Shown piece by piece: positions 25,713-53,323 of a DNA stretch of 64,000 bases. Source of the DNA: Rhodosorus marinus CCMP1338 (Eukaryota > Plantae > Rhodophyta); the NCBI GenBank assembly GCA_029953675.1, contig JAMWBK010000012.1, forward strand, positions 310,001 through 374,000. The letters run 5' to 3'. Under the pieces are notes generated by a model. The model was not told the origin of the DNA, did not search any database, and was given only the letters and a program-made list of their open reading frames with translations. Within the stretch, counting starts at the first letter, position 1. Each line of letters begins with the position of its first letter. The position numbers and the translations under genes were made by a program.

Positions 25713-26909
25713 CTACTTATCAACACAATCGCACATCCCGGGTCCAGACGACCCCCCAACTACAGCATTCTCGCAGGAGTTGTCCTCCCGATATTGATCG
25801 ATTGTCTTACACTGACTAATGTCAATGCACTGGTCTTTGGACAAGTCACAACAAGCACATTCACCGGAGGCGAGACGATATCCCTGCAAGTAGGATTCAC
25901 GTGATCGGAAGGTAAGTCTTCAGGTTTGTAAGTTCGAAATGATGAGGTGGGTATGGGAGAGTGTATTAAACAGGGCCGTACCACTTCGACGCCTGTGTTC
26001 TTTGAACATAGATCCTGAGTACCCGCACACACAGGAAATGCCGTATCTGGAACGCCTGGGAGGGAATTGATAATACATCTATCCCGTGCACTACATGTGC
26101 ACGTGCACAGACCCGTGTCGCTCTCAAGGAACTGCGAAAGTAAATAAAGAAGGAGAGCACAGTTAAAACCACTCTGGAAACAGTTCCTGGTCTACGAGTT
26201 GCACAGCGGAATATGCAAGTATCCTCACCGAAACCTCGTTGCTACACACGATATCCGAGAATTTGTCTCTAGAGACACAAAGAGGGTCGGCACTAGGGTC
26301 CGGCTGGAACGAACACTGCGTGAAGGTATCACAGCTACATTGAATTGGCACCTTGCATACTGTGACGTCGGATCCTTGGGCGACTCCGTTCGTGCAGACC
26401 TCTCCATCGGCAACTGGTTCAGCCTTGACATTTCTCGAATCTCCATTCTTGATGATGGCGTTGGTCACTAAATAGAGACGGGAGTCTCCGCAACATCCGC
26501 GATCATCCGCTGCAATCTCATCTTGACATATGACCATGCTTAACCTTTGTACAAGAGTGTCAGCAGGAAGACCCTTCTTCTGCAGGTGCTTAGCCACATT
26601 CCTTCGGTTGCGGTATTTCACTGGTGCAGAAATGAGCTCTCGCGTCCCAAAGAGACCCGCCCTGATACTCACCAGGCCAGCCGAATCGCGTGCCGTGAAG
26701 GTTAACCTCACACACATGGGATCCCTGTCGGGTTGGGCCCGAATACCAACGGTAACGACTGTCCTGCCCTCAAACCCGAGTCTCAAAGTGCTTTCATCTA
26801 CGACCTCTATGAGTCGACCCGAGTCCTTAGCCGCATCAAGACATGTCTGAGCCTTCACGGATACCGTGATAAGCATCAAGATCCCAGAAAAACACAAGTA
26901 TGTCCTCAT
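25713..26909 (-). CDS. Secreted Cys-rich modular protein, paralogue 1 (3 exons: 26909-26229, 26131-25982, 25883-25713)
   Basis: MRTYLCFSGILMLITVSVKA signal; shared head domain (C.R.TF..LVSIRAGLF..KYRNRR..IC..CCG); 97/98-bp phase-0 GT-AG introns; modules TGLCTCTC and SGECACC. Confidence 0.78.
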
Positions 26910-27817
26910 CTTCTTTAATAACAACAAAACAACGAAAGGGCCTGGCCAAGTACACGGATGACCACCGCTGGAGAGCAATACAACCTCGCTTTTACCAAGA
27001 ACAGAACGACCAGGAAGTACGCAACAGATAACCACCCACACCTCTTCCACCAACCTTTCTTCCTCCCCATACGATCAACTGACTCGCTACTTAGATGAGT
27101 TATGTAATGAGAAACGGCGACTGATTAAGGGAGAAAGTACGCCAGTCTTGAGCGGTGATAGGAGACCGGCCTATGCAATTGATCGTCAAGTGCGTGAGGG
27201 GCTTAAGCAAGACGATAGTGGGTTGGGATATCTTTGGAGTCGTTCACGTTCACTTGGGACGACAAATAAGGAAGAGTAATGCGATGTGAGTGTTCAATTC
27301 AAACGCACACTTTGGGCAGGAAACGGAGAGCTCGCACTAGGTTTTCTGCGGGTGGATCAAGCCTAAACATATGGAGGTTTCTATAAAAACGTTTAGAGAA
27401 AAGTAAACACACACATTTGATACAACGGCGGAAAATACGAGCGGGTGCTCGCTCACATCTGAAAGAGCTTCCAAAAGAAGAAGCGTTGGAAAACGATGCG
27501 GATATATCAGACTCTTGCCTTAAACATTTTTCATTCAGAAAACAGTCTTTCCGCCCTTTTACCGATGAGATGATAAAAAACTCTCAAATAGATACAGATT
27601 TCAGATATTGTCTTCACTATCTCAATTCATATATAATTTAGTGGCTAGCCAGTCTCTTTTTTGTAAAAGAGATAAGTTTCGAAGGATCTCGTTCGGATGG
27701 TTAAAAATATCGACTAAACCAAATCTATCCGACGTTGTAAAGGAGAAACGGTTTTTCCTTTTGCGGTTGGTCGGCTTTGTGCTGGCCGTGCCACATAATT
27801 CGTTTTACGATAGTATT

Positions 27818-28573
27818 CGAACGAATGGTTTAATCGGAGGCTGAAAAAAAAACCCCGAGGGGAAAAAAAGACTAAGCGCGGCGCAGTACTCGCGCCTCCA
27901 ACATCAAAGCGGCATTCATGCGCCACAGCAGGAAACTTAAGCGGGTAAACAACGATTGAAGACGGTCAGGGCGTTCGCGTAACAACTCCCGAAGCCAGCG
28001 AGAACCAACAGAGTCCATGAACCCAAAGCACTCAATGATCAGGGGTACCAAGCGATGTGCTAGTGCCGAAGCACGAACACCAGGGGAAGACAAAGCCCCC
28101 GCGTATTTGATCTCTTTGCGGCGTCTCATGCTGGCGGCGGCAGATCCACGGCGCTCCCCCGCAGCCGGGAGATAACGACTAGCTTGAGGGTTAGGAACAG
28201 CAAGATCAACGTATGTGGTACGGCGGCTGTCGTCACAGGTGATCACCAGGTCGGCTACACGGCGTTCATCATTTTGAAAGTCCGCGACGGGTAAAGGTTT
28301 CTCACGTTCGATTTCCAGACCGGCTTGCCGGACTATAGGCCGAAGTTCCCGGTATAACAGGTTCAAGATCCGTGTGTGGCGGCGGGTTCGAGCACCTTTC
28401 ACCGCCGGGCAACTAGCGAGCAGGTGGGCGCCAAAATCTGCGTTGTCTTAAGTCTGAGAGCAGAGAGGGCACGACGAACCCATCTCGTACGGCCAAGGGG
28501 GCTGATGTAAGCCGAGGTATAAGCGCAGTGAAGTACGCACTTCGAAATCCGACAGTGTGAGTGGCGGAAAGGC
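27818..28573 (-). mobile_element. Young family A 3' fragment
   Basis: ORF 27872-28402; TTCG tail. Confidence 0.92.
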
Positions 28574-28574
28574 C

Positions 28575-29343
28575 GTATACAACAACGAGCACAGACTGTC
28601 GGGGCTGTCGCCGAACACCCCCCCAGCCAACGAGAACGGAATCCATTCGATGTCTGGGGAAGACGGTCAGGTAAGACCAGGTCCAACGTTTGTTTGAGCT
28701 CCCGGTCAGAATTCTTAATAACATCGCCTAAACCAGGTCCTGGTTTAGTGCGAAAAAACGGCTCGCCAGCCAGCCAGGTTTGGGTGGAGGTCGGCAGGGA
28801 GACTGGTACAAGATGACATCGCCGATTGGAGCTCGAGAAACAAACCACTAGCACTTTCAGAGATACTAGAGTGTAGATTATCACTGGAAAGACTGACCTC
28901 CAAATTTCGGAAACTGGACACACTCGACGCGCTCAGCGTCGGGAGAGCGGTGCCCCGTTCCAATACCCGACCACGGCCGGTGGTCGGATAACAGCTCGGT
29001 TACAGAGGCCCAAACCACCCAGACATAGAGGGAGGCCCACTTGGGCACGAGCGATATCACGGGTGGGGTGCGGAAGATGACCCAACTCCTCATCTAAGAA
29101 ATATCCCAGCTCACCAAAGCTCTCATCGTGGGCACGGGTTGCTAGCCACCGACCTCAATGAGTGCGGAGCGAGAAGAACCAATTGGTGAGTCGCAGACTG
29201 CAACAATGTCGATAAAGTACCAACGAACATTGCAAGTAGTCACGAGGCAGCCGACGGAGCTCCGAGACCAGCTGCCGGTTCTTACGCAGAACCAGCAACA
29301 ACTCACCCTCCACGAGCGACGCAGACCCACAGGGGATGCCCAG
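28575..29343 (-). mobile_element. Old degenerate family A internal fragment
   Basis: Broken ORFs 28745-28963 and 29155-29385 (LGIPCGSASLVEGELL). Confidence 0.8.
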
Positions 29344-29784
29344 CCACAGAAAGTTGAGGTTGTTATTGACTACACAAAGCGTCAAGCATTCAGCCTGCAG
29401 CTCGCAATAGATGGACAGCTATAATACTCAGGTTGGATAAGGAAAAGAGGCAGTTCGGGGTGCAGGCTTTGGAACCCCCTTTGGGACAAGAAGATTTCGA
29501 ATCGAAAATTTCGGATGGCCTGGGGGAACTTCACATCTGTAATCTTCTATCTGAAAATCTGTCTATCAGAAATTTTCGATGGCGGATACAAGAAGATTTC
29601 AGATGGCTTCCCAGGCCATCCGAAATTTTCGATTCGAAATCGTGTTGTCCCAAAGGGGGTTCAATAGGCTGCACCCCGAACTGCCTCTTTTCCTTATCCA
29701 ACCTGAGTATTATCCATCTATCGCGTAGCTGCAGGCTGAATCTTGACGCTTTGTGTAGTCAATAACAACCTCAACTTTCGGTGG
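29344..29784. mobile_element. Fold-back / MITE-like element with about 180-bp imperfect inverted arms
   Basis: 29344-29524 is the reverse complement of 29610-29784 apart from a few substitutions and small indels (largest 6 nt); no TSD found. Confidence 0.7.
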
Positions 29785-29795
29785 TTTCAATGGCT

Positions 29796-31689
29796 GTGTC
29801 TCCCTTTGGCGATATTCCAGCGACATGCTTTCCGAGGCGCGCCATCGGCGCCTGGGGTTGCATACTTCCCTCCCTAGTTATTAGTTCATCTTCACGCCTT
29901 GCGTAGCGCTTCAGGCTATGCTAGTAAAGTCCTCACGCCTTGCGTAGCGCTTCAGGCTATGCTAGTCAAAGTCCAGTAAAATGTCGCTTTCTCCCCCCGA
30001 GGGACGTGTCGCTGAACTCTCTGCCACCCACTCTGCGACTAATCAGCGAACGTGAAGGGTTCGAACACCACGGCGTCGGATTGGGGACTGACAACTTTGT
30101 CCAAGCATCCTGCGAGCGAGTTTTAGCACGGCACAAGCAACTCACCGACGCCATTGAGCACCTACCCGACAGCATGCTGCAATCGGCCTGCTTGCTTTCC
30201 CGCTTTTGTGCCGGTCCCAGACTCAACTACTGGTTGCGCAGCCTGCCTCAAGCTTGGGGCTCGTGGATCGCGGCTAAAGCCGACGAAATGACCCTGCAAC
30301 ACTGGGGAACGCTCTTGGATGAGCCCCTCGATCTTGAAGCTGCTCCCGACAGGGACTTTATCCGTGCACAGATCGCTCTACCGTTGCGATTAGGGGGATT
30401 CGGCGTCGCAGACCGTGGGCTGGTATGCTCGCCAGCGGCGGTTGCCTCCTGGGCTACCGCGCTGCGAACGTTGGTGACCTTCCAGATGCGAAGTGCCTGC
30501 CTCTTGGCTCGAGCTTTGACCAACGAGGATCCAGTGACCCTGCCGCCCCCGCTTTTGACAATTTATGATGGTCTTCAACACGCGTTCAGGAGGTGCAACG
30601 CCGTGCCGGACGCAAATCGGTCCCGCTTTCGTTCCTGGAGGGAGCTGTTATGGGGACGAGCTGAAGCGATTGAGGATTCTCCCTCGACCGAGTTCTTGCC
30701 GATGACGGAGAGGCTAGCCCCGGGTCACCTGTTGCAGACTACCCGGATTTGAGCCGATTGTGGAGCTCCCGCACTGATGTGATTCAACATAGCCTCACCT
30801 GGGGCCAACACAGTGCCGTTCACACAGTCATGCTCAATTCTCCTCTCACGCCGCCTACCACTGCCGCTCGTCTCCGCGGCATGGGAGGCCACCTCTCGCA
30901 CTTGTGGTTAACCACTCTACCGTCGTCATTGAGTCATCGTCTCGATGCTTTCCAGTTCCGTTCTGCCGCACGGATCTATCTCGGTTTGCCACAGGCTCCG
31001 TGGCACTCTAATCGGCCGTCTTTCTGTCAGGGATGTGAGAGCCGGATTGACGCTTGTGGCTACCACTTCCTGGGTTCCTGCGGACTGTTGCGAGGTCTCC
31101 GTACGAGGCGTCACACTCGCCTCAAGTACATCCTCAGCGAATTTTTGACTCGGATAGGGCATACGGTTGAGGTTGAGTCGGAACTGCCCAGATCAATCTC
31201 GGACTCTGCACCGCCCCGTTGTATAGCCGATCTCCTCGTCTCCGACGCTGCTGCCAGACGCTCAACATATGTGGACCTTGCGATTACCTGCCCCGTGGCC
31301 AGCGCCCACCTCACCGCAGCCGCCCGCCGCCGGGGGGCCGCGGCTTCAGCCCTTCGAAGAGTTAAGGAACGACGGTATGCTGAGAGCATGGCCAGTCTGC
31401 CTTGCGCTGAGGGTCGCTCTCACCGGTTCCAGCCATTCATTGTGGAAAGCTTTGGTCACGTGGATAAGTCGGGTTTAGAGTGGTTGCGGAAATGTTTTGC
31501 TGAGCATCCTACTGAATATTTGGCGGTCTTGAGGCGTTTAAGTGTCTCCCTTTGGCGATATTCCAGCGACATGCTTTCCGAGGCGCGCCATCGGCGCCTG
31601 GGGTTGCATACTTCCCTCCCTAGTTATTAGTTCATCTTCACGCCTTGCGTAGCGCTTCAGGCTATGCTAGTAAAGTCCAGTAAAGTCCA
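29796..31689 (+). mobile_element. Composite family B insertion: two short 3' ends plus a 1.7-kb 3' half
   Basis: ORFs 29940-30752 and 30749-31630; whole composite flanked by GTTTCAATGGCT (29784-29795, 31690-31701). Confidence 0.9.
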
Positions 31690-31884
31690 GTTTCAATGGC
31701 TTTATTAGTGGTTTCAATACCCAAAAAACAATTATGACGGAAAACTGTTTGTGGAAACTCATGGTGAACTTTTGGAAAGTCAATATTGGAGTAGCCTCGC
31801 AAACGTTTCACTGACCATCCCATGAGTATCTTTCCTTCCCCCCCCCCGGGTCGGTTCAGTGTTGCTTTATGGAGATATTCTAGA

Positions 31885-32007
31885 AACGAACGAATGGTTT
31901 AATCGGAGGCTGAAAGAAAAAACCCCGAGGGGAAAAAAAGGCTAAGTGCGGCGAAGAACTCGCGCCTCCAACATCAAAGCGGCATTCATGCGCCACAGCA
32001 GGAAACT
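31885..32007 (-). mobile_element. Family A short 3' end
   Basis: 3' UTR plus TTCG tail; joined at ACT to a family B tail. Confidence 0.88.
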
Positions 32008-33190
32008 GGACTGGACTTTACTAGCATAGCCTGAAGCGCTACGCAAGGCGTGAAGATGAACTAATAACTAGGGAGGGAAGCATGCAACCCCAGGCGCCGA
32101 TGGCGCGCCTCGGAAAGCATGTCGCTGGAATATTGCCAAAGGGAGACACTTAAACGCCTAGCGCCAAATATTCAGTAGGATGCTCAGCAAAACATTTCCG
32201 CAACCACTCTAAACCCGACTTATCCACGTGACCAAAGCTTTCCACAATGAATGACTGGAACCGGTGAGAGCGACCCTCAGCGCAAGGCAGACTGGCCATG
32301 CTCTCAGCATACCGTCGTTCCTTAACTCTTCGAAGGGCTGAAGCCGCGGCGCCCCGGCGGCGGGCGGCTGCGGTGAGGTGGGCGCTGGCCACGGGGCAGG
32401 TAATCGCAAGGTCCACATATGTTGAGCGTCTGGCAGCAGCGTCGGAGACGAGGAGATCGGCTATACAACGGGGCGGTGCAGAGTCCGAGATTGATCTGGG
32501 CAGTTCCGACTCAACCTCAACCGTATGCCCTATCCGAGTCAAAAATTCGCTGAGGATGTACTTGAGGCGAGTGTGACGCCTCGTACGGAGACCTCGCAAC
32601 AGTCCGCAGGAACCCAGGAAGTGGTAGCCACAAGCGTCAATCCGGCTCTCACATCCCTGACAGAAAGACGGCCGATTAGAGTGCCACGGAGCCTGTGGCA
32701 AACCGAGATAGATCCGTGCGGCAGAACGGAACTGGAAAGCTTCGAGACGATGACTCAATGACGACGGTAGAGTGGTTAACCACAAGTGCGAGAGGTGGCC
32801 TCCCATGCCGCGGAGACGAGCGGCAGTGGTAGGCGGCGTGAGAGGAGAATTGAGCATGACTGTGTGAGCGGCACTGTGTTGGCCCCAGGTGAGGCTATGT
32901 TGAATCACATCAGTGCGGGAGCTCCACAATCGGCTCAAACCCGGGTAGTCTGCAACAGGGGACCCGGGGCTAGCCTCTCCGTCATCGGCAAGAACTCGGT
33001 CGAGGGGAGAATCCTCAATCGCTTCAGCTCGTCCCCATAACAGCTCCCTCCAGGAACGAAAGCGGGACCGATTTGCGTCCGGCACGGCGTTGCACCTCCT
33101 GAACGCGTGTTGAAGACCATCATAAATTGTCAAAAGCGGGGGCGGCAGGGTCACTGGATCCTCGTTGGTCAAAGCTCGAGCCAAGAGGCA
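32008..33190 (-). mobile_element. Family B (B1) 3' portion
   Basis: ORF 32150-33184, stem-loop and GTCCAGTCC tail. Confidence 0.92.
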
Positions 33191-33258
33191 AAATTAAATA
33201 TTCAGGCTTTATTACCCCCGTAGCGCTGGGGTAATAAAGCCTGAATATTTAATTTTGC
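33188..33258. repeat. Perfect 31-bp-arm inverted repeat with 9-nt loop
   Basis: GCAAAATTAAATATTCAGGCTTTATTACCCC-CGTAGCGCT-GGGGTAATAAAGCCTGAATATTTAATTTTGC. Confidence 0.95.
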
Positions 33259-33945
33259 ATCAGCCCCCTTGGCCGTACGAGATGGGTTCGTCGTGCCCTC
33301 CTGCTCTCAGACTGAAGACAACGCAGATTTTGGCGCCCACCTGCTCGCTAGTTGCCCGGCGGTGAAAGGTGCTCGAACCCGCCGCCATACACGGATCTTG
33401 AACCTGTTATACCGGGAACTTCGGCCTATAGTCCGGCAAGCCGGTCTGGAAATCGAACGTGAGAAACCTTTACCCGTCGCGGACTTTCAAAATCATGAAC
33501 GCCGTGTAGCCGACCTGGTGATCACCTGTGACGACAGCCGCCGTACCACATACGTTGATCTTTCTGTTCCTAACCCTCAAGCTAGTCGTTATCTCCCGGC
33601 TGCGGGGGAGCGCCGTGGATCTGCCGCCGCCAGCATGAGACGCCGCAAAGAGATCAAATACGCGGGGGCTTTGTCTTCCCCTGGTGTTCGTGCTTCGGTA
33701 CTAGCACATCGCTTGGTACCCCTGATCATTGAGTGCTTTGGGTTCATGGACTCTGTTGGTTCTCGCTGGCTTCGGGAGTTGTTCCGCGAACGCCCTGACC
33801 GTCTTCAATCGTTGTTTACCCGCTTAAGTTTCCTGCTGTGGCGCATGAATGCCGCTTTGATGTTGGAGGCGCGAGTACTTCGCCGCGCTTAGTCTTTTTT
33901 TCCCCTCGGGGTTGTTTTTTTCAGCCTTCGATTAAACCATTCGTT
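33258..33945 (+). mobile_element. Young family A 3' fragment
   Basis: ORF 33269-33892; candidate TSD CGTAGCGCTG at 33219-33228 and 33946-33955. Confidence 0.9.
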
Positions 33946-33955
33946 CGTAGCGCTG

Positions 33956-34230: not shown

Positions 34231-34316
34231 GTAACTAGCAAGTGGATGACTCGAAATTTCCGGAAAGGTACTTGCATAATATTGCGCACAGTCCACACAG
34301 AGTTGCGTACAAACAG

Positions 34317-35649: not shown

Positions 35650-35821
35650 CTCTTCACTACAAACACCTACGCTCGTTCCGTTCAACTCCTTACTTAATGT
35701 GAAGCCTAAATGACCCAAGCTCGTTGGTATATACTAATGTGGGATAAGTGGGGCTAATGAGGGATACTCCATAACGAGTAATAAAAGAATCACAGACGTG
35801 AAAGATATGGTGGTTTGCATG

Positions 35822-39149: not shown

Positions 39150-39340
39150 ACAGAGTCACAGACTACGTACTTGTGGTCATATGGCTTTTTTTGGAACGTC
39201 CATTTTCGTGTAAGTTATTGGGGGTTTTTTGTTCTTCGTCGCGCGGTTTCATTGGGATCAGTAGAGCGCCCATCCGACGCTAGGGGATGGGGCTCCATCT
39301 GACATTTTGATGTGTACGGGCAAACCTTGACTACAGATTG

Positions 39341-39408
39341 GAATGGTTTAATCGGAGGCTGAAAGAAAAAACCCCGAGGGGAAAAAAAGACTAAGTGCGG
39401 CGAAGACC
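39341..39408 (-). mobile_element. Family A 68-bp 3' end
   Basis: TSD GACTACAGATTG at 39329-39340 and 39409-39420. Confidence 0.88.
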
Positions 39409-39628
39409 GACTACAGATTGACGCTGTCTGTTTTCGGTTTTTTTTCACCTTGTACGGTTCACAGGCGCTTGCCGTTGAAGAAGGAGACTTATTGCAGTCG
39501 GTTTCATGTTCAATGGAACTCGTGTCCGGGGTTTTGATGTGTACGGGCAAACCTTGACTACAGATTGACGCCGTCTGTTTTCGTTTTTTTTTCACCTTGT
39601 ACGGTTCACAGGCGCTTGCCGTTGAAGA

Positions 39629-39900
39629 CGAACGAACGAACGAACGAACGAATGGTTTAATCGGAGGCTGAAAAAAAAAACTCCGAGGGGAAAAAAAGAC
39701 TAAGCGCGGCGAAGTACTCGCGCCTCCAACATCAAAGCGGCATTCATGCGCCACAGCAGGAAACTTAAACGGGTAAACAACGATTGAAGACGGTCAGGGC
39801 GTTCGCGGAACAACTCCCGAAGCCAGCGAGAACCAACAGAGTCCATGAACCCAAAGCACTCAATGATCAGGGGTACCAAGCGATGTGCTAGTGCCGAAAC
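39629..39900 (-). mobile_element. Family A 3' fragment
   Basis: Long (TTCG)n tail; TSD TGAAGA at 39623-39628 and 39901-39906. Confidence 0.88.
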
Positions 39901-40193
39901 TGAAGAAGGAGACTTATTGCAGTCGGTTTCATGTTCAATGGAACTCGTGTCCGGTCGACTGAATGAAAAAGCATGTGTTTGATGTGTTTATTCAGGATTC
40001 ACATATGTAGAACTAATCGATAGCTTCACAGTCGAGCTACGTTCGTATATGTTTGGGAGGTGGCTGGTAGGAGTGTGGGGATGGGACTAGAGCGGGGTTG
40101 ACTTTTGCCGTGTGGATATTAACGTGAGGTGCAGGGGGGTAGCTGCTCAGTCGGTTGCTTGAGATGGTTGCTCCTGCTTTCGTTTTGGGAAAC

Positions 40194-43100
40194 ATGAACC
40201 GACTCGCAGCGTTCGTGCTGCTGAGCATGGCCTTTTTGAAGCTAGCCACGGGGGCCACTACATGCGAGGCAGACCCGATGAAGGGTTTGTTTGGTCACGA
40301 CGGTGCGTGCTTTGATCTTGTCGATAGTGATGGTGTAAAGCATGGGTCCGTGTGTACCTCTACGGTTGCTTTGAAAAGGGGAATGTGCATTCGCGCCAAG
40401 TACTCTGCCGAGAATGCAGGTTCATCCGTATTAAAGCTGAGGGGGGGGCTTCACAAGAAGGACGAACGCATCACCAAAAGATGGTCGAGGTATACCCGCA
40501 AGCGAACTGTGGCCAGCATTAATTCACCGGATACTTCCAGCGCCAGCCTTTATTTCTGCCCCAGCAACATCTCCGTGCTTGAATTGCCGTGCTGCGGAGC
40601 AGACCATCAATTCCTCGGATTTGCGGTGATTGCCGTGCCCGGATCTGAGCCAGATTCTGATCGAATGCAAGTCAAAGCTTATGTCGCTCCTCAGACGACC
40701 ACTGCCGACGGTATTTGTAGCACAAGGACGGGAGGAGGAGGCCGGGAAGAGTTTCTCTGTACTTTGAGCGTGACCTGTGATAGTTGCCCTAACCGTGCTT
40801 GCAACGACAAGGGCACGTGCGTAAAAAGGATCGATTATGCGTGCGGTGACGCGGAGGTAAAACACGAATGTTCGTTCACTTTCATCAATGCGGCCTTTCT
40901 GATGAGGAGATACTTGGGATTATTTCTTTCCCCAGGAAGCGTTTACGGATCCCGACACAGGTGCTTGTGGATGCCAATGCGACTCCAGCAGAGACGATGT
41001 ATGCGTTGATGGGTTTGACGGCTGTGTAAGCCTTTCAGACTATGAATCAAGCTCATGTAATGATGCGGAGGTATGCCAACAAAAACCTTTGAGGAAGACC
41101 GAGGAAACGACGGGGTCGAAGAGCAGCCCAGACTCACCGCTGTGCCCAACCTCGTTTATTCGAATCTTTTTCCAACCAGTTCGGCGCCGTCCATCCGGAA
41201 ACGCGCGGGTGCGGATGCAGTTGCTCCTCTGCCCGTGGAAGCTGCATAGACCCGGCAAGAAACAATCAATGCCGGGACATCTTAGAGTATGGAGCAAACG
41301 TTTGTTCTGCTACAGAGGTAAGTGTGACTCCTCACGGTCGACTAAGCAGCGCATACTCAAAAGCCCGTGCACAAGCTTACTTGCTCGAACCGTTCTGCAA
41401 TCAGATCGGCGTCATCGACCCGGCAACTGGCGAATGTGGATGCAGTTGCTCTATTGACGACGGAGGCTGTATAGATATAGCAAACAACAACGAATGCCGG
41501 AGTATCTCAGAGTACGGAGAAGATGCTTGTTCTGCTTTAGAGGTAGGCATGACCCAACCCTTCGTGGTCGAAACGCAACCCAGACTCAAGTCCCTGGCTC
41601 ACCTACTCGGACCGTTCTCGGACCGTTCTCGGACCGTTCTCGGACCAGATTGGCGTCGTCGACTCAGCAACAGGCGAATGTGGATGCAGTTGCTCTATTG
41701 AAGATGGAGGCTGTTTGGACACTGCAAATAGAAACAAATGCCGGAGTATCTCAGAGTACGGAGAAGATGCTTGTTCTGCTTTAGAGGTAGGCATGACTCA
41801 ACCCTGCACGGTCGAAACGCAACCAAGACTCAAGTCCGTGCACAAGCTCACCTCTTCGGACCGTCTCGGACCAGATTGGCGTCGTCGATTCCGCAACGGG
41901 GGAGTGTGGATGCAGTTGCTCTGTTGACGATGGAGGCTGCATAGACACAGCAAATAACCAATGCCGGAGTATCTCGGAGTACGGAGAAAATGTTTGTTCT
42001 GCGGTAGAGGTAGGAACCCTTCGCGGTCTAAGGGCAACCCAGACTCAAATCTGTGCCCAAGCTCAATTACTCGAGCCGTTCTCCAACCAGATCGGCGTCG
42101 TCGACTCCGCAACAGGCGACTGTGGATGCGGTTGCTCTATTGGAAAAGGAGGCTGCATAGATGAAGCAGCAAACAACCGGTGCTGGGATGCCTCCGAGTA
42201 CGCGGAAGAGAATTGTTCCGCCGTTGAAGTAAGCGCTAGCCCTGCATATCAGACCGATATCGTGGAAGTAGTTTTCTGCATTCGGAGTGACCAACTCATG
42301 GACTCTCCTTTCCTTTATTTGATCAGTTCGGGAGTGTGAATACGAGTACTGGTGCATGCAATTGTGTCTGTGATACCACTGTCGGATGCTTTGACGGCAA
42401 CAAGTGCAGGACGCTTGATCAATTTGGCACGGAGTTCTGCTCTTCCGGAGAGGTATACCGCACACGCACTAACTGCGCCCGTATGGACTGAATCTCTTAC
42501 TACTCTCGGATTTGATACTTTCTCTTTATCAGGTTCCCTTTTTCCATCTCAGCGGCAGCTGCGAATGCTGCAGAACGGCACCGGGCCAGGACCAATGCAT
42601 TTTTTCCGGACTCTGTATGGGCAATCAAGAGTTTGCTAGAGCGTTTTGCACCTCTAGCGCGGCTACGCAGGACGCCAGTGGGTTTTGCACATGCATTGAT
42701 TGCCCAAGCAATCAATGCCTTGACGAAGACAACATCTGCGTGCCAATATGGTCAGATAGCGCAAAAGCAGTCTGTTCGAGCTTGGCGGAAGTCCCGACCT
42801 ACTTCGTGCGTTTTAGAACACTCCATACCCTCCTCGAATCCATGAAAGATAAACCCCAAAGCTGACCGCCAACTCTACGCTTCTACCGTCTCCAGGCTGC
42901 CACGAGGAATGATAGTACAGAAAAATGTGAGTGCTGCGTGACGGACGATAGCACCTGTGCAAACGTGGACGGTGGCATAGATAATGCGACGTGTCTCAGC
43001 GTTTCTGAGTACTCGGCTTGCAATAGCTCTGAGGTGAGAAAAAGTACTGAGCAAAAATCTGTTGTTTTGTGCGGCTTGATTTTCCACACACCCTTCTCAC

Positions 43101-44835
43101 TCATATGTCCCAAACTTGCTGTTCATGATGAGAGCAGAAACCGTACACTGATGATGAAAAATGCAGCTGTTGTCCAGTCGGTGATGAGACCGCTGAACGC
43201 TGCTTAGTGGCTTCCGGGATTCGCCTTCATGACAAATGGTGGACCCCAGCGCCAGGGCCATGTGCCAGTTTGAATGATTTCGGCATTAACTATTGCAACG
43301 GTGAAAGCTTTCCGACCCGAACAAACGTACGTCTTCGCCCTTGTGTAGCAGCTACGCATATAAGCGCGTATGGAATCAATACTCACACTTATCCCTCTTC
43401 TGCCTCCTTCCTCTAATCACCTATTGTACCACTCGATAGGCATTAACTTCAAGCGAAGGTTTTTGCCGCTGCGATGTTTGTCCTACCAGCCAGTGCCTTG
43501 ACAAGACTTATGGCACCTGCGAAAATCCCGACGAATGGGGTACTAACAATAACTGCGCTGTAAGTGTTTTCCTACAGATGAACTCTCTTCTCGACAGCCG
43601 CCATACGAAATACGGCAGGAATCCTCACCTTTTTTACGCCCATCTCTGACAATTGTGGTGTTCTTATGGATTCTAGCTTGTCGAGGAGGATGCGGAAGGT
43701 TTCTGCAAGTGTACGGTCCCAGCTCCGCATACTTGCCCAATCGATCAATGCCTTGACGAGAACAACACCTGCGTGCCAATATGGTCAGATAGCGCAAAAG
43801 CAGTCTGTTCGAGCTTGGCGGAAGTCCCGACCTACTTCGTGCGTTTTAGAACACTCCATACCCTCCTCGAATCCATGAAAGATAAACCCCAAAGCTGACC
43901 GCCAACTCTACGCTTCTACCGTCTCCAGGCTGCCACGAGGAATGATAGTACAGAAAAATGTGAGTGCTGCGTGACGGACGATAGCACCTGTGCAAACGTG
44001 GACGGTGGCATAGATAATGCGACGTGTCTCAGCGTTTCTGAGTACTCGGCTTGCAATAGCTCTGAGGTGAGAAAAAGTACTGAGCAAAAATCTGTTGTTT
44101 TGTGCGGCTTGATTTTCCACACACCCTTCTCACTCATATGTCCCAAACTTGCTGTTCATGATGAGAGCAGAAACCGTACACTGATGATGAAAAATGCAGC
44201 TGTTGTCCAGTCGGTGATGAGACCGCTGAACGCTGCTTAGTGGCTTCCGGGATTCGCCTTCATGACAAATGGTGGACCCCAGCGCCAGGGCCATGTGCCA
44301 GTTTGAATGATTTCGGCATTAACTATTGCAACGGTGAAAGCTTTCCGACCCGAACAAACGTACGTCTTCGCCCTTGTGTAGCAGCTACGCATATAAGCGC
44401 GTATGGAATCAATACTCACACTTATCCCTCTTCTGCCTCCTTCCTCTAATCACCTATTGTACCACTCGATAGGCATTAACTTCAAGCGAAGGTTTTTGCC
44501 GCTGCGATGTTTGTCCTACCAGCCAGTGCCTTGACAAGACTTATGGCACCTGCGAAAATCCCGACGAATGGGGTACTAACAATAACTGCGCTGTAAGTGT
44601 TTTCCTACAGATGAACTCTCTTCTCGACAGCCGCCATACGAAATACGGCAAGAATCCTCCCTATATCCCCACCCATCTCTGAAAATTGTGGTGTTCTTAT
44701 GGATTCTAGCTTGTCGAGGAGGATGCGGAAGGTTTCTGCAAGTGCACGATCCCAGGTCTGCAATCGGACGACACCAAGCAAGTCGTGGAGTTGGGGACAA
44801 CTAGGCTGCTCCTTTCAGCAAGCGCGGGTTTTTAG
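40194..44835 (+). CDS. Secreted Cys-rich modular protein, paralogue 3, about 17 exons and about 1010 aa
   Basis: MNRLAAFVLLSMAFLKLATG signal; head exon 40194-40856; module exons 40936-41070, 41180-41317, 41405-41542, 41649-41786, 41875-42009, 42091-42228, 42327-42452, 42533-42790, 42896-43033, 43138-43326, 43440-43559, 43677-43823, 43929-44066, 44171-44359, 44473-44592, 44710-44835; all introns GT-AG and phase 0 (donor GTCCCG at 42791/43824 is weak). Confidence 0.78.
42711..44753. repeat. 1033-bp tandem duplication inside paralogue 3
   Basis: Identical ORF pairs offset by 1033 bp (for example 42875/43908 and 43207/44240); divergence only near the unit edges. Confidence 0.95.
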
Positions 44836-45599
44836 ACCATTCGCGCTTTTATCTATCCCAGCTAGCTTTCATCAATAAATAGTTGACCCCTAAAAACTAG
44901 AGGCGACCTCAATATAGATCCTACTGCTACTGCAAGCTGCTGCTAGCAACCACAGCGGCTACTGCCAAAGAAAAAAAGCTGCAGAAGATTGAAAGGAAGG
45001 AGTCTTCTCATCGGGGTAAAGGTGTTTGCTATATTTGACTGTAAAATAAAGGGGAGAACATATGTCTGTGTGGATGAATCGTAGGCCATCGCATTGAGCA
45101 CACCGGCTGGTGGTAACGCCCGGCCGGGCGTCGCAGTATGAGACCCCTGGACGGGCAGTTTGTGTGTTCGTTTTGGACCGCTTAAGATCATTACTTCACT
45201 GCTGTAGACAACTGCCCAAAAAATGCTACAAAGTTGCGCAGAGCTCACTGTCCCGGACCAAAAACAATGAAGGAACGTTTTGTATAGAAGATCGAGAGCG
45301 ATTCCCACAGATGACCGTTCGACCAGCGGGTTTTGGGGTTTCTTCCTTGCTCTGCAAAGGGTTTCCTTCTAGAAATGTGGACTCCTGAGACAGGCGACAC
45401 GAGCCATAGAATAGTAGATACCAGCTCCTCTCCATGAGAAAATCGATTTCGGGCACGCCGATATCGGGTGAAATTCACTACGACTCACGGTGCGGTGTGT
45501 GCCAAACCCCATACCCAGGATGATATTCAGGGCTGATCCGTCCATAGTCAACGCTATGCCACTGTGCAACGTCGGCCAGGAATTGAACTTGGAGATGGT

Positions 45600-47338
45600 G
45601 GTTTTACTGGCTTTATTGGCTGTATTGGCATAGCCTACAGCGCTACGCAAACCGTGAAAAAGAACTAAGCACTAGGCAGGGAAGCGTGCAATCCGAGGCG
45701 CCGATGCCGCGCCTCGGCAAGCATGCTGCTCGCATATCGCCACAGAGAGACACTGGACTTTACTAGCATAGACTGAAGCGCTACGCAAGGCGTGAAGATG
45801 AACTAATAACTAGGGAGGGAAGCATGCAACCCCAGGCGCCGATGGCGCGCCTCGGAAAGCATGTCGCTATAATATCGCCAAAGGGAGACACTTAACGCCT
45901 CAAGAGCGCCAAATATTCAGTAGGATGGAGACACTTAAGCGCTGCAAAAGTTCCAAGTATTCAAGAGGATGCTCTGTGAAACATTTCCGCAACCACCCCA
46001 AACCCGAACTCTCCACGTGACCAAAGCTTTCCACAATGAAAGTCTGGAACCGGTGGGAGCGACCCTCAGCGCGAGGCAGGCTGGCTATAATACCAGCATA
46101 CCGTCGTTCCTTCACGCGGTGAAGGGCCGAAGCAGCTGCTCCCCGGCGGCGGGCGGCAGCCGTGACATGGGCGCTTGCCACAGGGCATGTAATCGCGAGG
46201 TCAACATATGCTGAGCGTCTAGCGGCAGCATCAGAGACGAGGAGATCTGCGATACAGCGGGGCGGTGCCCTATCCGAGACCGATCTGAGTAGTTCCGATT
46301 CCACCTCAACCGTATGCCCTACCCGAGTCAGACATTCGCTGAGAATGCACTTGAAGCGAGTGTGACGCCTCGTACGAAGACCTCTCAACAGTCCGCATGA
46401 ACCTAAGAAATTTACTGGCTTTATTAGCGTAGCCTACAGCGCAACGCAAATAGTTAAAAGGAACTAAGAACTAGGTAGGGAAGCGTGCAAACCCAGGCGC
46501 CGATGCCGCGCCTCGGCAAGCATGCTGCTCGAATATCGCCACAGAGAGACACTTAAGCGCCCCAAAAGTTCCAAGTATTCGACAGGATGCTCAGTGAAAC
46601 ATTTCCGCAACCACTCCAAACCCGACTTCTCCACGTGACCAAAGCTTTCCACAATGAAAGTCTGGAACCGGTGGGAGCGACACTCAGCGCGAGGTAGGCT
46701 GGCCATACTCTCAGCATACCGTCGTTCCTTCACGCGGAGAAGGGCCGGAGCAGCTGCTCCCCGGCGGCGGGCGGCAGCCGTGAGATGGGCGCTTGCCACA
46801 GGGCATGTAATCGCGAGGTCAACATATGCTGAGCGTCTGGCGGCAGCATCAGAGACGAGGAGATCTGCGATACAGCGGGGCGGTGCCCTATCCGAGACCG
46901 ATCTGTGTAGTTCCGATTCCACCTCAACCGTATGCCCTACCCGAGTCAAACATTCGCTGAGAATGTACTTGAAGCGAGTGTGACGCCTCGTACGAAGACC
47001 TCTCAACAGTCCGCATGAACCTAAGAAATGGTAACCACAAGCATCGATCCGACTCTCACATCCCTGACAGAAAGACGGCCGATTAGAGTGCCAAGGAGCT
47101 TGTGGCAAACCCAGGTAAATCCGTGCGGCAGAGCGAAACTGGAAGGCATCCAGACGGTGACCCGGTGATGACGGCAGGGTCGTTAACCACAAATGTGAAA
47201 GATGGCCTCCCATGCCGCGGAGGCGAGCGGCGGTGGTAGGCCATCTGAGTGGAGAGTTGAGGAAGATTGCGTGAGCGGCACTGTGTTGGCCCTTGGTGAG
47301 GCTATGTTGTATCACATCAGTGCGCGAGCTCCACAGTC
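45600..47338 (-). mobile_element. Nested stack of family B (B2 and B1) 3' fragments
   Basis: Tails at about 45600, 45755 and 46410; B1 insert 45755-45927 with TSD GAGACACT (45747-45754, 45928-45935); ORFs 45900-46388 and 46464-47315. Confidence 0.9.
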
Positions 47339-47354
47339 AAATTTACTAGCAGAC

Positions 47355-49325
47355 GTGTTCAGCAGCGTCTCGCGGGCGCATGCTTTGGAGGTGATTCGCA
47401 GGGTATTCCCGGAGGCGTGGCCGTTTCTATCCGGTATTTACGTGGGGGGGAGCCTCCCTTACTTGACAATGCAGGGCTGTGTTTTTGCAGCACGTACTGG
47501 CGTTCAACAGGGTGATCATTGTGGGCCGGTACTTCACGCATGTGCCTTGCAACTCGTGCTCCAGCGACTGGCGGCTGAGGTGCCGGAGCTCCGCATCTGT
47601 GCCTACCATGGCGAAGTGACGTTGCTGGGCACTCCTGAGCACTTGGCTCGGAGACTGACCCAGATCGAACGAATGGTTTAATCGGAGGCTGAAAAAAAAA
47701 CCCCGAGGGGAAAAAAAGACTAAGCGCGGCGAAGTACTCGCGCCTCCAACATCAAAGCGGCATTCATGCGCCACAGCAGGAAACTTAAGCGGGTAAACAA
47801 CGATTGAAGACGGTCAGGGCGTTCGCGGAACAACTCCCGAAGCCAGCGAGAACCAACAGAGTCCATGAACCCAAAGCACTCAATGATCAGGGGTACCAAG
47901 CGATGTGCTAGTGCCGAAGCACGAACACCAGGGGAAGACAAAGCCCCGCGTATTTGATCTCTTTGCGGCGTCTCATGCTGGCGGCGGCAGATCCACGGCG
48001 CCCCCCCGCAGCCGGGAGATAACGACTAGCTTGAGGGTTAGGAACAGCAAGATCAACGTATGTGGTACGGCGGCTGTCGTCACAGGTGATCACCAGGTCG
48101 GCTACACGGCGTTCATCATTTTGAAAGTCCGCGACGGGTAAAGGTTTCTCACGTTCGATTTCCAGACCGGCTTGCCGGACTATAGGCCGAAGTTCCCGGT
48201 ATAACAGGTTCAAGATCCGTGTGTGGCGGCGGGTTCGAGCACCTTTCACCGCCGGGCAACTAGCGAGCAGGTGGGCGCCAAAATCTGCGTTGTCTTCAGT
48301 CTGAGAGCAGAGAGGGCACGACGAACCCATCTCGTACGGCCCAGATCGAAGCAATCGCACGTGGAGTAGATCTAACCGTGGTTTGCCACAGGCTCCGTGG
48401 CACTCTAATCGGCCGTCTTTCTGTCAGGGATGTGAGAGCCGGATTGACGCTTGTGGCTACCACTTCCTGGGTTCCTGCGGACTGTTGAGAGGTCTCCGTG
48501 AAAGGCGTCACACTCGCCTCAAGTACATCCTCAGCGAATTTTTGACTCGGATAGGGCATCCGGTTGAGGTTGAGTCCCAACTGCCTAGATCAATCTCGGA
48601 CTCTGCACCGCCCCGTTGTATAGCCGATCTCCTCGTCTCCGACGCTGCTGCCAGACGCTCAACATATGTGGACCTTGCGATTACCTGCCCCGTGGCCAAC
48701 GCCCACCTCACCGCAGCCGCCCGCCGCCGGGGGCCCGCGGCTTCAGCCCTTCGAAGAGTTAAGGAACGACGGTATGCTGAGAGCATGGCCAGTCTGCCTT
48801 GCGCTGAGGGTCGCTCTCACCGGTTCCAGCCATTCATTGTGGAAAGCTTTGGTCACGTGGATAAGTCGGGTTTAGAGTGGCTGCGGAAATGTTTTGCTGA
48901 GCATCCTACTGAATATTTGGCGGTCTTGAGGCGTTTAAGTGTCTCCCTTTGGCGATATTCCAGCGACATGCTTTCGGAGGCGCGCGATCGGCGCCTGGGG
49001 TTGCATGCTTCCCTCCCTAGTTATTAGTTCATCTTCACGCCTTGCGTAGCGCTTCAGGCTATGCTAGTAAAGTCCAGTAAAGTCAAGTCCAGTCCAGTTG
49101 AATACTTGGAACTTTGGCGGCGCTTAAGTGTCTCTCTCTGGCCATATTCGAGCAGCATGCTTGCCGAGGCGCGGCATCGGCGCCTGTAATTGCACGCTTC
49201 CTTGCCTAGTTTTTAGTTCCTTTTCACGGTTTGCGTAGTGCTGTAGGCTATGCTAATGAAGCCAATAAAGCCGATAAAGCCAAGCCATTGAAGCCCAGTA
49301 AATCCAGTAAAACGCAGTAAAGCGC
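47355..49325 (+). mobile_element. Family B RT fragment (47355-47669, 48340-48380) followed by B1 3' part (48381-49100) and a B2 end (49100-49325)
   Basis: ORFs 47202-47681 (GVQQGDHCGP, AYHGE) and 48383-49027; tails present. Confidence 0.88.
47670..48339 (-). mobile_element. Family A 3' fragment inserted in family B RT
   Basis: TSD CCCAGATCGAA at 47659-47669 and 48340-48350. Confidence 0.92.
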
Positions 49326-49845
49326 AGTAAAGCAAGATCAACGTACGTCGTACCGTGGCTATCGTCACAGGTGACCACGAGGTCAGCCAAGCGGCGTTCA
49401 TGATTTTCTTTTGGTAGTCTGCAACAGGCAGGGGCTTCTCACGTTCAATTTCAAGATCAGTTTGCCGTACGATAGGCCGAAATTCGGGGAATAGCAGGTT
49501 CAATATCCACGTATGTCGTTGGGTTCGGGCACTTTTCACGGCGGGGCGGCTGTGGAGCAGGTGGATGCCAAAATCCGCGGTGTCTTCGCTCTGAGAGCAT
49601 AGAGGGCACGGCGAACCCATCTCGGAAGGCCAGGGCAGCTGATCGAAGCCGAGGTATAAGGGCAGAAAAGTGCGCGCCTCGAATTCGGTGAGTGTGAGTG
49701 GCGGAAAAGCAGGGGGCGGTCATGAGCCGCTGGGAGCTAATACACCCCCCAAGACAACGCGGGCCCGACCTCGGGAAGATGATACCATCTGCGCGAGAAG
49801 TCAGCCATAGCACTTTGTAAGTCCAAGAAAGGGTGTTTTGCAACG
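49325..49845 (-). mobile_element. Old family A internal fragment
   Basis: ORF 49213-49620 (CPLCSQSEDTADFGIHLL, LEIEREKPLPVADY). Confidence 0.8.
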
Positions 49846-49861
49846 CGCCCGTTCCACAATG

Positions 49862-50480
49862 GAACGAATGGTTTAATCGGAGGCTGAAAAAAAACCCCGA
49901 GGGGAAAAAAAGACTAAGTGCGGCGAAGAACTCGCGCCTCCAACATCAAAGCGGCATTCATGCGCCACAGCAGGAAACTTAAGCGGGTAAACAACGATTG
50001 AAGACGGTCAGGGCGTTCGCGGAACAACTCCCGAAGCCAGCGAGAACCAACAGAGTCCATGAACCCAAAGCACTCAATGATCAGGGGTACCAAGCAATGT
50101 GCTAGTGCCGAAGCACGAACACCAGGGGAAGACAAAGCCCCCGCGTATTTGATCTCTTTGCGGCGTCTCATGCTGGCGGCGGCAGATCCACGGCGCTCCC
50201 CCGCAGCCGGGAGATAACGACTAGCTTGAGGGTTAGGAACAGCAAGATCAACGTATGTGGTACGGCGGTTGTCATCACAGGTGATCACCAGGTCGCACAC
50301 TGAAGGTTGGAACATGTGAGAACGGCCCTCCGCCCAGGCGGCCTGGCCACGCGCTCGGCATACCGTCGTTCCTTCAGTCGGCGAAGTGCAGGCGCTGATG
50401 CCCCCTTCCGGTGGACAGCGGCAGAGGGGAGATATGTACATGAAACAGGGGATGTGACAGCGAGGTCTACAAAGACCCCT
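49862..50480 (-). mobile_element. Family A 3' fragment (49862-50295) fused at its 5' end to a diverged family B-like RLE segment
   Basis: ORFs 49914-50441 and 50285-50659 (FVDLAVTSP..LRRLKERRY). Confidence 0.85.
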
Positions 50481-50998
50481 GTTGTTTGCAGTAATGAGGC
50501 ACGCCCGGATATTCTGTGGTGCTGCTCGGGAACTGGCGATACTTCTTCATGATTACGGATCTGATGATTGACAGAGGGCAAGGGGGCGCTGAGATGTTTA
50601 CGAGGTACTACAGATACATTTGATACGAGTTGGCTACGCTGCTCAACTGTAACCATCAACGGACACTGCTGTTGTCAGTGCGTCCCTTCCGCAGAAGCAT
50701 AGAGTTCTACAACGCTGGGCAGACTGGAGGAGTAGCTCCGATGGGCAATGCAAAAAGGTGCTACGTGAGGAACGGACAAACATGAAGCTGAGACGCTATT
50801 TCCAGAGTTTTCAATTTCGCTGATAATGTCGCCTTGGAAACTTCGGAACCTGCGGCGGTTGCTACTTGTTCCTGCCATTGATGGCCCTCCCGTATACTCT
50901 GGAAGCGTCCCTGATTTGCTTATTCAGGACTTTTATCCTTCCTTAGTATCTAGACTTAAATCTGGTTTCCCAAGTGGCCCGCATTTATTTCTTTAACT

Positions 50999-51572
50999 GG
51001 ACTTTACTGGACTTTACTAGCATAGCCTGAAGCGCTACGCAAGGCGTGAAGATGAACTAATAACTAGGGAGGGAAGCATGCAACCCCAGGCGCCGATCGC
51101 GCGCCTCGGAAAGCATGTCGCTGGAATATCGCCAAAGGGAGACACTTAAACGCCTCAAGACCGCCAAATATTCAGTAGGATGCTCAGCAAAACATTTCCG
51201 CAACCACTCTAAACCCGACTTATCCACGTGACCAAAGCTTTCCACAATGAATGGCTGGAACCGGTGAGAGCGACCCTCAGCGCAAGGCAGACTGGCCATG
51301 CTCTCAGCATACCGTCGTTCCTTAACTCTTCGAAGGGCTGAAGCCGCGGCGGGCGGCTGCGGTGAGGTGGGCGCTGGCCACGGGGCAGGTTATCGCAAGG
51401 TCCACATATGTTGAGCGTCTGGCAGCAGCGTCGGAGACGAGGAGATCGGCTATACAACGGGGCGGTGCAGAGTCCGAGATGGATCTGGGCAGTTCCGACT
51501 CAACCTCAACCGTATGCCCTATCCGAGTCAAAAATTCGCTGAGGATGTACTTGAGGCGAGTGTGACGCCTCG
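50999..51572 (-). mobile_element. Family B (B1) 3' fragment
   Basis: TSD TTTCTTTAACT at 50988-50998 and 51573-51583. Confidence 0.92.
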
Positions 51573-51768
51573 TTTCTTTAACTCACGGAGGTCAAAGTCA
51601 CTGCTGTAGCGCTAAGGTCCGCTGAGAACATAGGGAATAGAGGAGAGAATGCCCTCGACGGTGCAGGAGAGTACGCTTTCTAGGCAACTCCATGGACTGG
51701 GTCGTAGTGCCTCGCTAACGCTTCTCATTGAGAAAATTTATCGCTCGCACCCATTCTTATCCTTGTGG

Positions 51769-53323
51769 TCATGGTGTCGGTTTTACGATACATTCACAAC
51801 CATTACCATCGGCGCCTACCATACCAAGACTCGATGGTATCTGCTTCAACACAAGTAGGTTCAATGGGGGACATGAATTTTCATCAGTTCTCGAGGGCGA
51901 CTGTGGGAGGAAGACCACTGAGGTCCACTATTACTCGGAGACAACGAACGCGCGGCGTGAAAAGCAACTTACGAATCCCGGGGCACAATTATCACACCCA
52001 TTATAACACGCACACGAGCCGTTTGTAGTCCTGAAAGCCGTCTACAAGTATGGAAAAAATGGAGTACACAGAGACTCATCATCAGCGATTTGAAATCTGG
52101 AGTACGGAAAACGGGTTCTACAAGAAAACTGTTGATGTTCCCTTTCACCGCGTACCATTGTAGATAAGGGACAACCTCCCTCTACGGTGTTGGGAGTGGC
52201 GGGGGCAGCTTCAATACAGTTGCTGGTGGAGAAGCTGAAGCAGGCGTCGTTCGGGCAGTGAAAAACACAATCACAGTTTCCATATTCATTTGCTTCGATG
52301 GTCTTGCAAGTACATACGACAGTAAACAATTCCCGTTAGGTCCTTTCTCTTAACCAGATCACCCCGTTGGTTGGGGTTTCACTTGTAAGGACACACAAGC
52401 ATACCGTGATTTCCATAGGGAAAGGACACCGCCCATACGTTGAGGGTTCGATGCAGGTAGAGGTGGTTTGATCAATGCACTGAGTTTCCGGGCACGTAGA
52501 GCATTCACACGCGCCTGACACGGAGTTCGCCACAGCAACCTAGGCGGGATATGAGCACAGCGGGTTACGAGTCAGAAGCTGGCTCTGCTTGCTTACGGTT
52601 CGTCAGCGCGAGAGCAAGAAGAAATGTATTTAAACAAACCTCACGAACTGGGCAGCTTTCCCGTGTTGCGTCCTTGAGGCTTATGCAACCCCCTTCCTCT
52701 CCCCTGCAAAAGCCTGTGTCGCACGGCTCTTCACATGAGTTTTCAAGGGTGCAGACATATCGGAAGGGCTTCTTCACATCCGCCACCTCGCACCGCTGAT
52801 TCGTTAATTCGGACGGCGTTAGATAGGCTCGTACAGTCTTTGGTCCTTTTGCATCAGAAACTCTCATTACTGCGAACGCGAAAAATTCAAGTAAACCACA
52901 GCACAGTCCCTCACGAATCAAGATCCGGTCCGGACAAATGTCTATGGCCCTCCGCAGAACGGGCGGTTCAGTGGTAAGCACAGCAACTTTCTTCCTCCTC
53001 GTGAACCTCTCCTTGCCGGTAGGTAGGATCTCTCCAATGGTGAACAACCCCCCCCTGAGTTTCAGGAGACTGACGCCATCCCCCGAAGCGGTAAATGTCG
53101 CTCGAAAGCATTTTCCATCCTTCCTCGGCACAAGAGAAACAACGACGCTCCCGAGCGTAGTGCCAGCTTCGTCTACCAGGTCCGCCCTCAGATCATCAGA
53201 AGTATAGACCTTATCGCTCAACTCGCCAGCGCACGTGCGTACATTCTCTTCGGCTCTTGACATACCCACCAGTGTCAGGCTCAAAAAAACGAGCACGACG
53301 ACTCTCACCATCACTCTCACCAT
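51769..53323 (-). CDS. Secreted Cys-rich modular protein, paralogue 4 (exons 53323-52640, 52539-52405, 52302-52156, 52041-51973, 51900-51769)
   Basis: MVRVMVRVVVLVFLSLTLVGMSRA signal; head domain (CFRATF..LLKLRGGLF..RFTRRK..IC..CCG); phase-0 introns of 100, 102, 114 and 72 bp; modules SGACEC, YGNCDC, NGSCAC. Confidence 0.77.

Follow-up and report, generated by a model that had tools for sequence, protein, structure and literature searches.

What are the four related, cysteine-rich genes that lie among retroelement copies in a 64 kb stretch of the nuclear genome of the unicellular red alga Rhodosorus marinus CCMP1338, and how do their products come to differ so widely in length? The stretch, which we refer to as the window, covers 64,000 nucleotides of contig JAMWBK010000012.1 in assembly GCA_029953675.1 (window position being contig position minus 310,000), in a genome of 31.2 Mb with 8,392 genes, 24,821 introns and RNA-seq-trained BRAKER gene models (PMC10250338). 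An original prediction for this locus had proposed an unrecognised family of secreted proteins, each with a conserved head followed by Cys-rich modules on symmetric exons, as an exon-cassette system for diversifying an extracellular receptor, adhesin or lectin. We find that the family is transcribed, restricted to one species and signal-peptide-bearing, with an unrecognised head and Cys module, and that its module tails lengthen by tandem copying of whole exon-intron units. Judged from sequence, it belongs to a known general kind, the secreted modular Cys-repeat proteins, whilst the head and module themselves match no known family; full-text literature searches turned up no description of the head-plus-module family.

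Four genes with a common head and phase-0 exons

By tblastn the window contains four copies of the head and no more (g1 to g4, Table 1), at the places originally predicted, each ~170 amino acids (aa) in length and sharing 27–42% identity with one another (E-values 1e-7 to 1e-32). All of the head motifs that had been claimed are present in the alignment (DLVDxxGxxLGxV, CFRxxF, LLKLRxGxF, RFTRRK, ICP, CCG, RAY and VCTLExSC). Downstream of the heads the modules appear as short, Cys-rich open segments in other frames, and we used them to guide manual gene models, each of which was checked for GT-AG sites and phase. These models bear out the predicted 2, 3, 16 and 4 further exons and reproduce the phase-0 pattern in full: each of the 25 introns has GT...AG ends and falls in phase 0, and the lengths of all internal exons are divisible by three. 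Intron lengths had been given as 72–127 bp and are 79–132 nt in our models; 14 of the 25 introns contain an in-frame stop and nine have a length divisible by three. The full architecture (signal peptide, head motif set and C-x-C-type modules on phase-0 exons) was found in all four genes, the N-terminal signal sequence of each, as judged from its residues, being hydrophobic, typical and cleavable-looking. The expectation of one module per further exon mostly holds, the departures being exon 9 of g3, which encodes two modules, and the last module of g4, which is split between a four-Cys exon and a final C-x-C exon, where g1, g2 and g3 just end in C-x-C. The 3′ end of the head exon already carries the first Cys module, and exons 11 and 15 of g3 each encode one long module of 63 aa.

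The g1 product consists of a signal peptide, the head, three six-Cys modules and the C-x-C end, and from residue 13 onwards our model and the public BRAKER protein P0006 are identical (P numbers denote R. marinus genome or MMETSP0315/MMETSP0011 cDNA records, apart from P0028 and the bacterial P0035). Its head belongs to a 'VEYRNRRN' subfamily, the nearest relative being P0021 at 44% identity, whilst the g2 head shares 53% identity with the MMETSP cDNA protein P0005. The public g2 model is 262 aa long and ends beyond exon 2 by reading into intron 2, and the public g4 model (P0001, 252 aa) is likewise a read-through containing the head only; our g4 model has the same five-exon layout as the BRAKER model of the paralogue P0003. 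The 16 introns of g3 share GT-AG ends and phase 0 and measure 79–117 nt, and an in-frame upstream ATG at 40164 is a candidate start, as the paralogue P0008 starts likewise. The nearest paralogues of g3 are P0008, P0009 and P0039. A listing of the public annotation over window positions 42565–63323, which g3 overlaps in part, has no gene called at g3, and a search with full-length g3 yielded no orthologous cDNA, its sole matches being two paralogues from R. marinus.

That introns at module boundaries are real in this family follows from three kinds of evidence. BRAKER models of paralogues elsewhere on the contig are laid out alike: in P0020 one-module exons come after a head exon, its first 13 introns all being phase 0 and 70–103 nt long, and the phase-0 layout recurs in P0003 (four introns) and P0008 (all six introns). 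In MMETSP cDNA, head and modules are contiguous in a single open reading frame (P0005 on L004), and one such intron was found both retained and spliced out in transcript L009 and its sister isoform (see below). These observations bear on the suspicion that the genes are decaying copies, whether pseudogenes or gene-prediction artefacts of a repeat-rich region. The lack of a public gene over the listed part of g3, the truncated g2 and g4 models and the transposon-rich surroundings would fit such an origin, but the reading frames of all four genes are intact across 3–17 exons with canonical splice sites, the ratio of nonsynonymous to synonymous substitution rates (dN/dS) is <1, and paralogues are transcribed and spliced, hence we regard decay as highly improbable.

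Table 1 Features of the window, with positions numbered from its first nucleotide.
Feature	Position	Strand	Description
g1	26909-25713	-	3 exons: 26909-26229, 26131-25982, 25883-25713; 333 aa
g2	35649-34317	-	4 exons: 35649-34999, 34886-34755, 34656-34516, 34388-34317; 331 aa
g3	40194-44835	+	17 exons: head exon 40194-40856 and 16 module exons; about 1037 aa
g3 exons 3-8	41180-42452	+	tandem one-module exon-plus-intron units, period about 226-244 bp
g3 four-exon 995-bp unit	42728-43722, copy 43761-44755	+	repeat 1033 bp downstream, 98.6% identity
g4	53323-51769	-	5 exons: 53323-52640, 52539-52405, 52302-52156, 52041-51973, 51840-51769; 368 aa
g4 head exon	52640-53323	-	signal peptide, predicted ~170-aa beta-sandwich with 8 conserved Cys, first Cys module; structure-model reference
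Apparent retroelement copies, seemingly two related families, full or partial	3965-5974(-), 12535-13656(+), 20554-22120(+)		with reverse transcriptase (Pfam RVT_1)
Retroelement copies, continued	24557-25099, 27872-28402, 29940-31630, 32150-33184, 33269-33892
Retroelement copies, continued	45900-47315, 47908-49027, 49914-50441, 54274-55467, 55697-57677
Ty3/gypsy-type pol open reading frame	6828-8903	-	reverse transcriptase, RNase H, integrase zinc-binding and integrase core domains
Single-exon open reading frames, 340 and 337 aa	14355-15377, 18233-19246	+	no Pfam match; first with clear signal peptide
Repeated open reading frames starting MAHECRFDVGG.S.SPRLVFF.P..FF...	39215-39754(-), 47427-47774(-), 62649-62981(+)		looks like another dispersed repeat
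Open reading frame with initial low-complexity SRSFGG / SSSGGDL repeats	291-1184	+

Duplication, selection and splicing of the modules

The g3 gene records how its tail was lengthened. Exons 3 to 8 form a tandem array detected by Tandem Repeats Finder, in which the most similar units (E4 to E6) share 85–88% identity in their exons and 69–90% in their introns; as the introns are alike as well as the exons, whole exon-intron units were copied. Within g3 intron 4, a perfect 11-bp microsatellite (CTCGGACCGTT x 3.7, positions 41606–41646) accounts for a length difference among otherwise homologous introns. Further downstream a unit of four exons is repeated, the two 995-bp copies differing at 14 positions, 10 of which are clustered within one intron, and this duplication is recent. 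A paralogue shows the same process, P0020 containing four near-identical two-exon units, whilst among g3-like paralogues the first and last modules are common and the internal sets differ. Paralogues thus differ in module number because exon-plus-intron units duplicate in tandem and symmetric phase-0 exons preserve the frame, as the original prediction had supposed in holding that modules could be duplicated without a frameshift. It also follows that 25 phase-0 introns out of 25, although far beyond chance, are not 25 independent events, since many of the exon-intron units are tandem copies of one another. Diversifying selection, in contrast, is not what we observed: dN/dS between tandem g3 modules ranges from 0.14 to 0.58, the modules are under purifying selection and are not positively selected as a whole, and the same values indicate that they are real, constrained coding sequence.

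Could the symmetric exons instead generate a repertoire of isoforms from each gene through alternative splicing? All module exons are 0-0, any subset could be skipped in frame, and isoforms are indeed seen among the transcripts of several members of the family. However, in four MMETSP isoform clusters the isoforms differ only by read-through that starts exactly at module boundaries or exon ends, and in the one cluster checked at the DNA level the read-through is a retained intron. In this case (transcript L009) a 77-nt GTAAC...AG intron is retained directly after a module end, with the next module following downstream in another frame, whilst the sister isoform has the same 77-nt intron spliced out. 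No isoform missing an internal module was seen in the four clusters, so the exon skipping that had been anticipated did not appear, and the symmetric phase is also the simple by-product of tandem copying of one ancestral exon-intron unit. We therefore consider a splicing-based repertoire very unlikely. What stands of the proposed exon-cassette system is the symmetric exons and the duplication of units, what found no support is diversification through splicing, and the word system overstates what is a lineage-specific family with copy-number-variable repeats.

Intron read-through also explains several short or 'head-only' public models, including P0001, the 262-aa g2 model and P0007. The public g2 and g4 models are cut off in this way, P0007 clearly so, and several other 'head-only' models probably are. 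A bolder proposal would make a virtue of this, in that a new extracellular ligand-binding fold limited to Rhodosorus or the Stylonematophyceae might serve as a programmable surface-recognition and adhesion repertoire, with stalk length set through rapid gain and loss of exon-intron units, and with regulated intron retention at phase-0 boundaries deliberately yielding truncated, head-only or short-stalk secreted isoforms alongside the full-length protein; we rate this as a long shot.

Head and module compared with known families

An alignment of 31 heads identified a set of invariant or near-invariant positions (C8, C49, C107, C118, C119, C155, C168, C174, L26, G35, G69 and A128) and a conserved basic strand (R-F/Y-T-R/K-R/K-R/K), with no conserved His or Met among the 31 sequences. 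AlphaFold2 run on this alignment predicted the g4 head to be all-beta with high confidence (predicted local distance difference test, pLDDT, 92.3; predicted template modelling score, pTM, 0.86), superseding a model from seven sequences (pLDDT 66) that was too weak for its Foldseek result to be trusted. In the pLDDT-92 model the basic motif is part of an ordered strand and not of a loop, and we accordingly down-weighted a furin/kexin convertase site at RFTRRK. Foldseek comparison of the model with the PDB returned no significant neighbour (best E-value 0.028, template modelling (TM) score ≤ 0.29), the non-significant top matches being generic sandwiches (UNC119 and Kir C-terminal domains) and Drosophila C2-DSL-EGF. 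Against viral models there was one marginal match, to the uncharacterised Pithovirus LCPAC001 protein A0A481Z1W0 (E-value 8.7e-4, TM 0.42), which aligns over 153 columns at 8% identity with the head model (window positions 52640–53254) and is its sole structural match below an E-value of 1e-3. Pfam gave no match to the four window heads at E ≤ 1 nor to the 31 family heads at E ≤ 10, and NCBIfam and PDB sequence searches with head and modules were empty, all of which upholds the original description of head and module as unrecognised.

The module is 40–63 aa long and follows the pattern C-x-C-x(0-7)-C-x(4-9)-C-x(5-19)-C-x(6-14)-C in the 19 modules compared, the C-x-C falling at Cys1-Cys2 in all 19 with spacings of 1 / 0-7 / 4-9 / 5-19 / 6-14. 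In the AlphaFold model the first module, attached to the head, forms two short strands; an EGF domain is characterised by two hairpins and a 1-3, 2-4, 5-6 disulfide topology. Using hmmscan (E ≤ 10) on the 790-aa g3 tail, on P0003 and on a single module, no EGF-type family and no Ca-binding motif was recognised, and the module has no Pfam match. A module profile matched nothing in the PDB or in an index of 5.8 billion proteins, which is weak evidence of absence as the profile has only 44 positions, and a metagenome scan found no relatives.

By analogy, the nearest functional and architectural counterparts are the EGF-repeat mosaic proteins (Notch ligands), pherophorins and frustulins. The EGF-repeat proteins Delta and Serrate (C2/MNNL-DSL-EGF) likewise combine a signal peptide, an N-terminal beta-sandwich and a string of six-Cys modules, often with one module per symmetric exon, and the Drosophila C2-DSL-EGF structures 7alk and 7alt are among the top, non-significant Foldseek matches (TM 0.24–0.29). 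They differ in that EGF has its C-x-C at Cys4-5, with at least eight residues ahead of Cys6, no cyclic shift of the window modules gives the EGF pattern, and no match to profiles of the Pfam EGF clan, such as EGF, EGF_2, hEGF, EGF_CA and Laminin_EGF, was found at E ≤ 10; shuffled modules in metazoans are, moreover, typically encoded by phase 1-1 exons, compared with 0-0 here. Pherophorins (PF12499), extracellular-matrix glycoproteins of volvocine green algae, are also a lineage-specific, expanded family of secreted algal proteins that couple a globular domain to a repetitive rod, and P0017 has a Pro/Ser/Thr-rich stretch, but in the red-algal family the rod consists of Cys modules rather than hydroxyproline-rich repeats. 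The DOMON domain (PF03351) resembles the head in being extracellular, all-beta, about 150–170 aa long and of roughly 11 strands; however, no DOMON structure is among the best 50 Foldseek PDB matches and the heads have no conserved His/Met heme ligands. Diatom frustulins are secreted, acidic proteins of the algal cell covering with Cys-rich repeated domains, for which Ca-binding is suspected, and they lack this head.

UniRef applies the names DOMON, Pherophorin and EGF-like to different members of the family, and these vary from one member to the next and are unverified leads. 'DOMON domain-containing protein' for P0011 has no Pfam DOMON match in P0011 or the 31 heads, the Pfam pherophorin family misses P0024 (named 'Pherophorin domain-containing protein') and all 31 heads at E ≤ 10, and 'EGF-like domain-containing' for P0018 and P0047 was not reproduced by Pfam. 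A phmmer match in the PDB between P0011 and a snake three-finger toxin (E-value 0.13) was dismissed as noise from Cys composition.

Range, proposed function and genomic setting of the family

A profile search in which all 1.84 billion protein representatives were read gave 35 matches, of which 34 are true and one, the bacterial repeat protein P0035 (E-value 2.7e-4), is spurious, a product of several weak repeats. Cluster look-up assigned 29 of the 34 true matches to R. marinus, through either its genome or the MMETSP0315/MMETSP0011 records; the others are P0001 (from the window), P0004 (named R. marinus), P0006 (placed on the genome contig), P0003, and P0028, whose source was not looked up. 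A search with the g4 head likewise returned Rhodosorus marinus proteins only. The genome holds at least 22 members (18 locus tags, together with g1, g2, g4 and g3), 13 of which lie on JAMWBK010000012.1 (1.16 Mb), spread between about 18 kb and about 1.03 Mb. The head is N-terminal throughout the family, whilst the C-terminal part may consist of Cys modules, RTX repeats, a Pro/Ser/Thr-rich mucin-like stretch (P0017) or other repeats (P0029, P0032 and P0033). RTX Ca-binding repeats (Pfam HemolysinCabind) are joined to the head in P0021 (E-value 1.2e-48) and P0038 (1.9e-38); they follow the Cys modules in P0021/P0037 and replace them in P0036/P0038. Long, bacterial-type RTX nonapeptide arrays such as those in the MMETSP transcripts of these four proteins are unusual for a eukaryotic alga. 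RTX GGxGxD repeats were not found by profile scan in the g3 tail or the g4-like P0003, nor were they seen in the translated tails of g1, g2 and g4.

What might such proteins do? We favour, with slightly better than even confidence, the reading that they are lineage-specific secreted matrix or adhesion proteins of the cell coat, in which a binding head is carried on an acidic stalk rich in disulfides. Their extracellular character is suggested by the N-terminal signal sequences, by a Cys total that is even in all but one of six proteins counted, the exception being g2 with 27, and by paralogues whose heads are fused to RTX or mucin-like stretches. Charge is divided along the chain, the heads having an isoelectric point (pI) of about 5.6–8.7 and the tails being acidic (pI about 4.1, 12.5% Cys, D+E far above K+R). 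Binding of the ligand would fall to the head, for which, by charge and analogy, a surface or an anionic component of the alga's wall or mucilage is the most plausible partner; a rigid spacer or stalk, possibly stabilised by Ca2+, or a cross-linking region would be formed by the disulfide-rich modules; and the whole would act as a matrix or adhesion component of the cell coat, with a stalk whose length evolves by unequal recombination and is not varied by splicing.

Several points weigh against this interpretation. Secretion and localisation are predicted from sequence, and the ligand is proposed from charge and analogy. No transmembrane segment or glycosylphosphatidylinositol (GPI) anchor that would attach the proteins to the cell is visible; a GPI anchor on g3 was judged unlikely, its C-terminal hydrophobic stretch being too short. 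The public models truncate g2 and g4 and none is listed for the g3 part, so that the expression of these four genes is presumed and their splice junctions are those predicted by our models. Of the roles originally offered, receptor is the least likely, as most members are without a transmembrane or GPI-like C-terminus, and receptor, adhesin and lectin alike are putative roles.

Two other functions deserve weighing beside a structural role in the cell coat. The family is large, divergent and species-restricted, with best between-strain matches of only 44–63% identity, its genes are embedded among retrotransposon copies with 13 of at least 22 members on a single contig, and its C-terminal parts are highly variable, as might be expected of secreted lectins or agglutinins for pattern recognition, aimed at bacteria, viruses or grazers and subject to birth-and-death evolution where transposons abound. 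Similarity to known lectin or immune domains was not found, however, and the modules are under purifying and not positive selection, so that we consider a role in recognition or defence unlikely. The strongly acidic tails, and the two paralogue lineages in which the head is joined to RTX repeats, suggesting interchangeable Ca-dependent tails, would suit Ca-binding, frustulin-like wall proteins, whose modules bind Ca2+ or cross-link polysaccharide and whose head is a targeting or assembly domain. As the modules show no recognisable Ca-binding motif, and the likeness to frustulins is an analogy, this too appears doubtful, and rather more so than recognition or defence.

Copies of what appear to be two related retroelement families lie between the four family genes (Table 1). 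They carry a conserved C-terminal domain of ~175 aa (...VADLVITCDD.RRTTYVDLAV... / ...IADLLVSDAAARRSTYVDLAI...) with no Pfam match. A public gene of 316 aa overlaps the second of the two single-exon open reading frames. Elsewhere on the contig, about 9.5 kb from P0020, a gene at L001 23013–23545 (contig about 262.9–263.4 kb) has a weak precomputed Pfam EGF match and may be another Cys-rich secreted gene of the same region.

The extracellular protein biology of red algae is almost unexplored, and here a transcribed, species-specific family comprises at least 22 genes. The head, whose structure is predicted with confidence and which has no solved relative, gives structural and cell-wall studies a concrete target. 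The family also provides a clean, non-animal example of mosaic proteins that grow by tandem duplication of symmetric exon-plus-intron units, a process which adds introns in a lineage with intron-poor relatives, and it is of relevance to red-algal cell biology, to the evolution of introns and exons, and as a candidate new fold.

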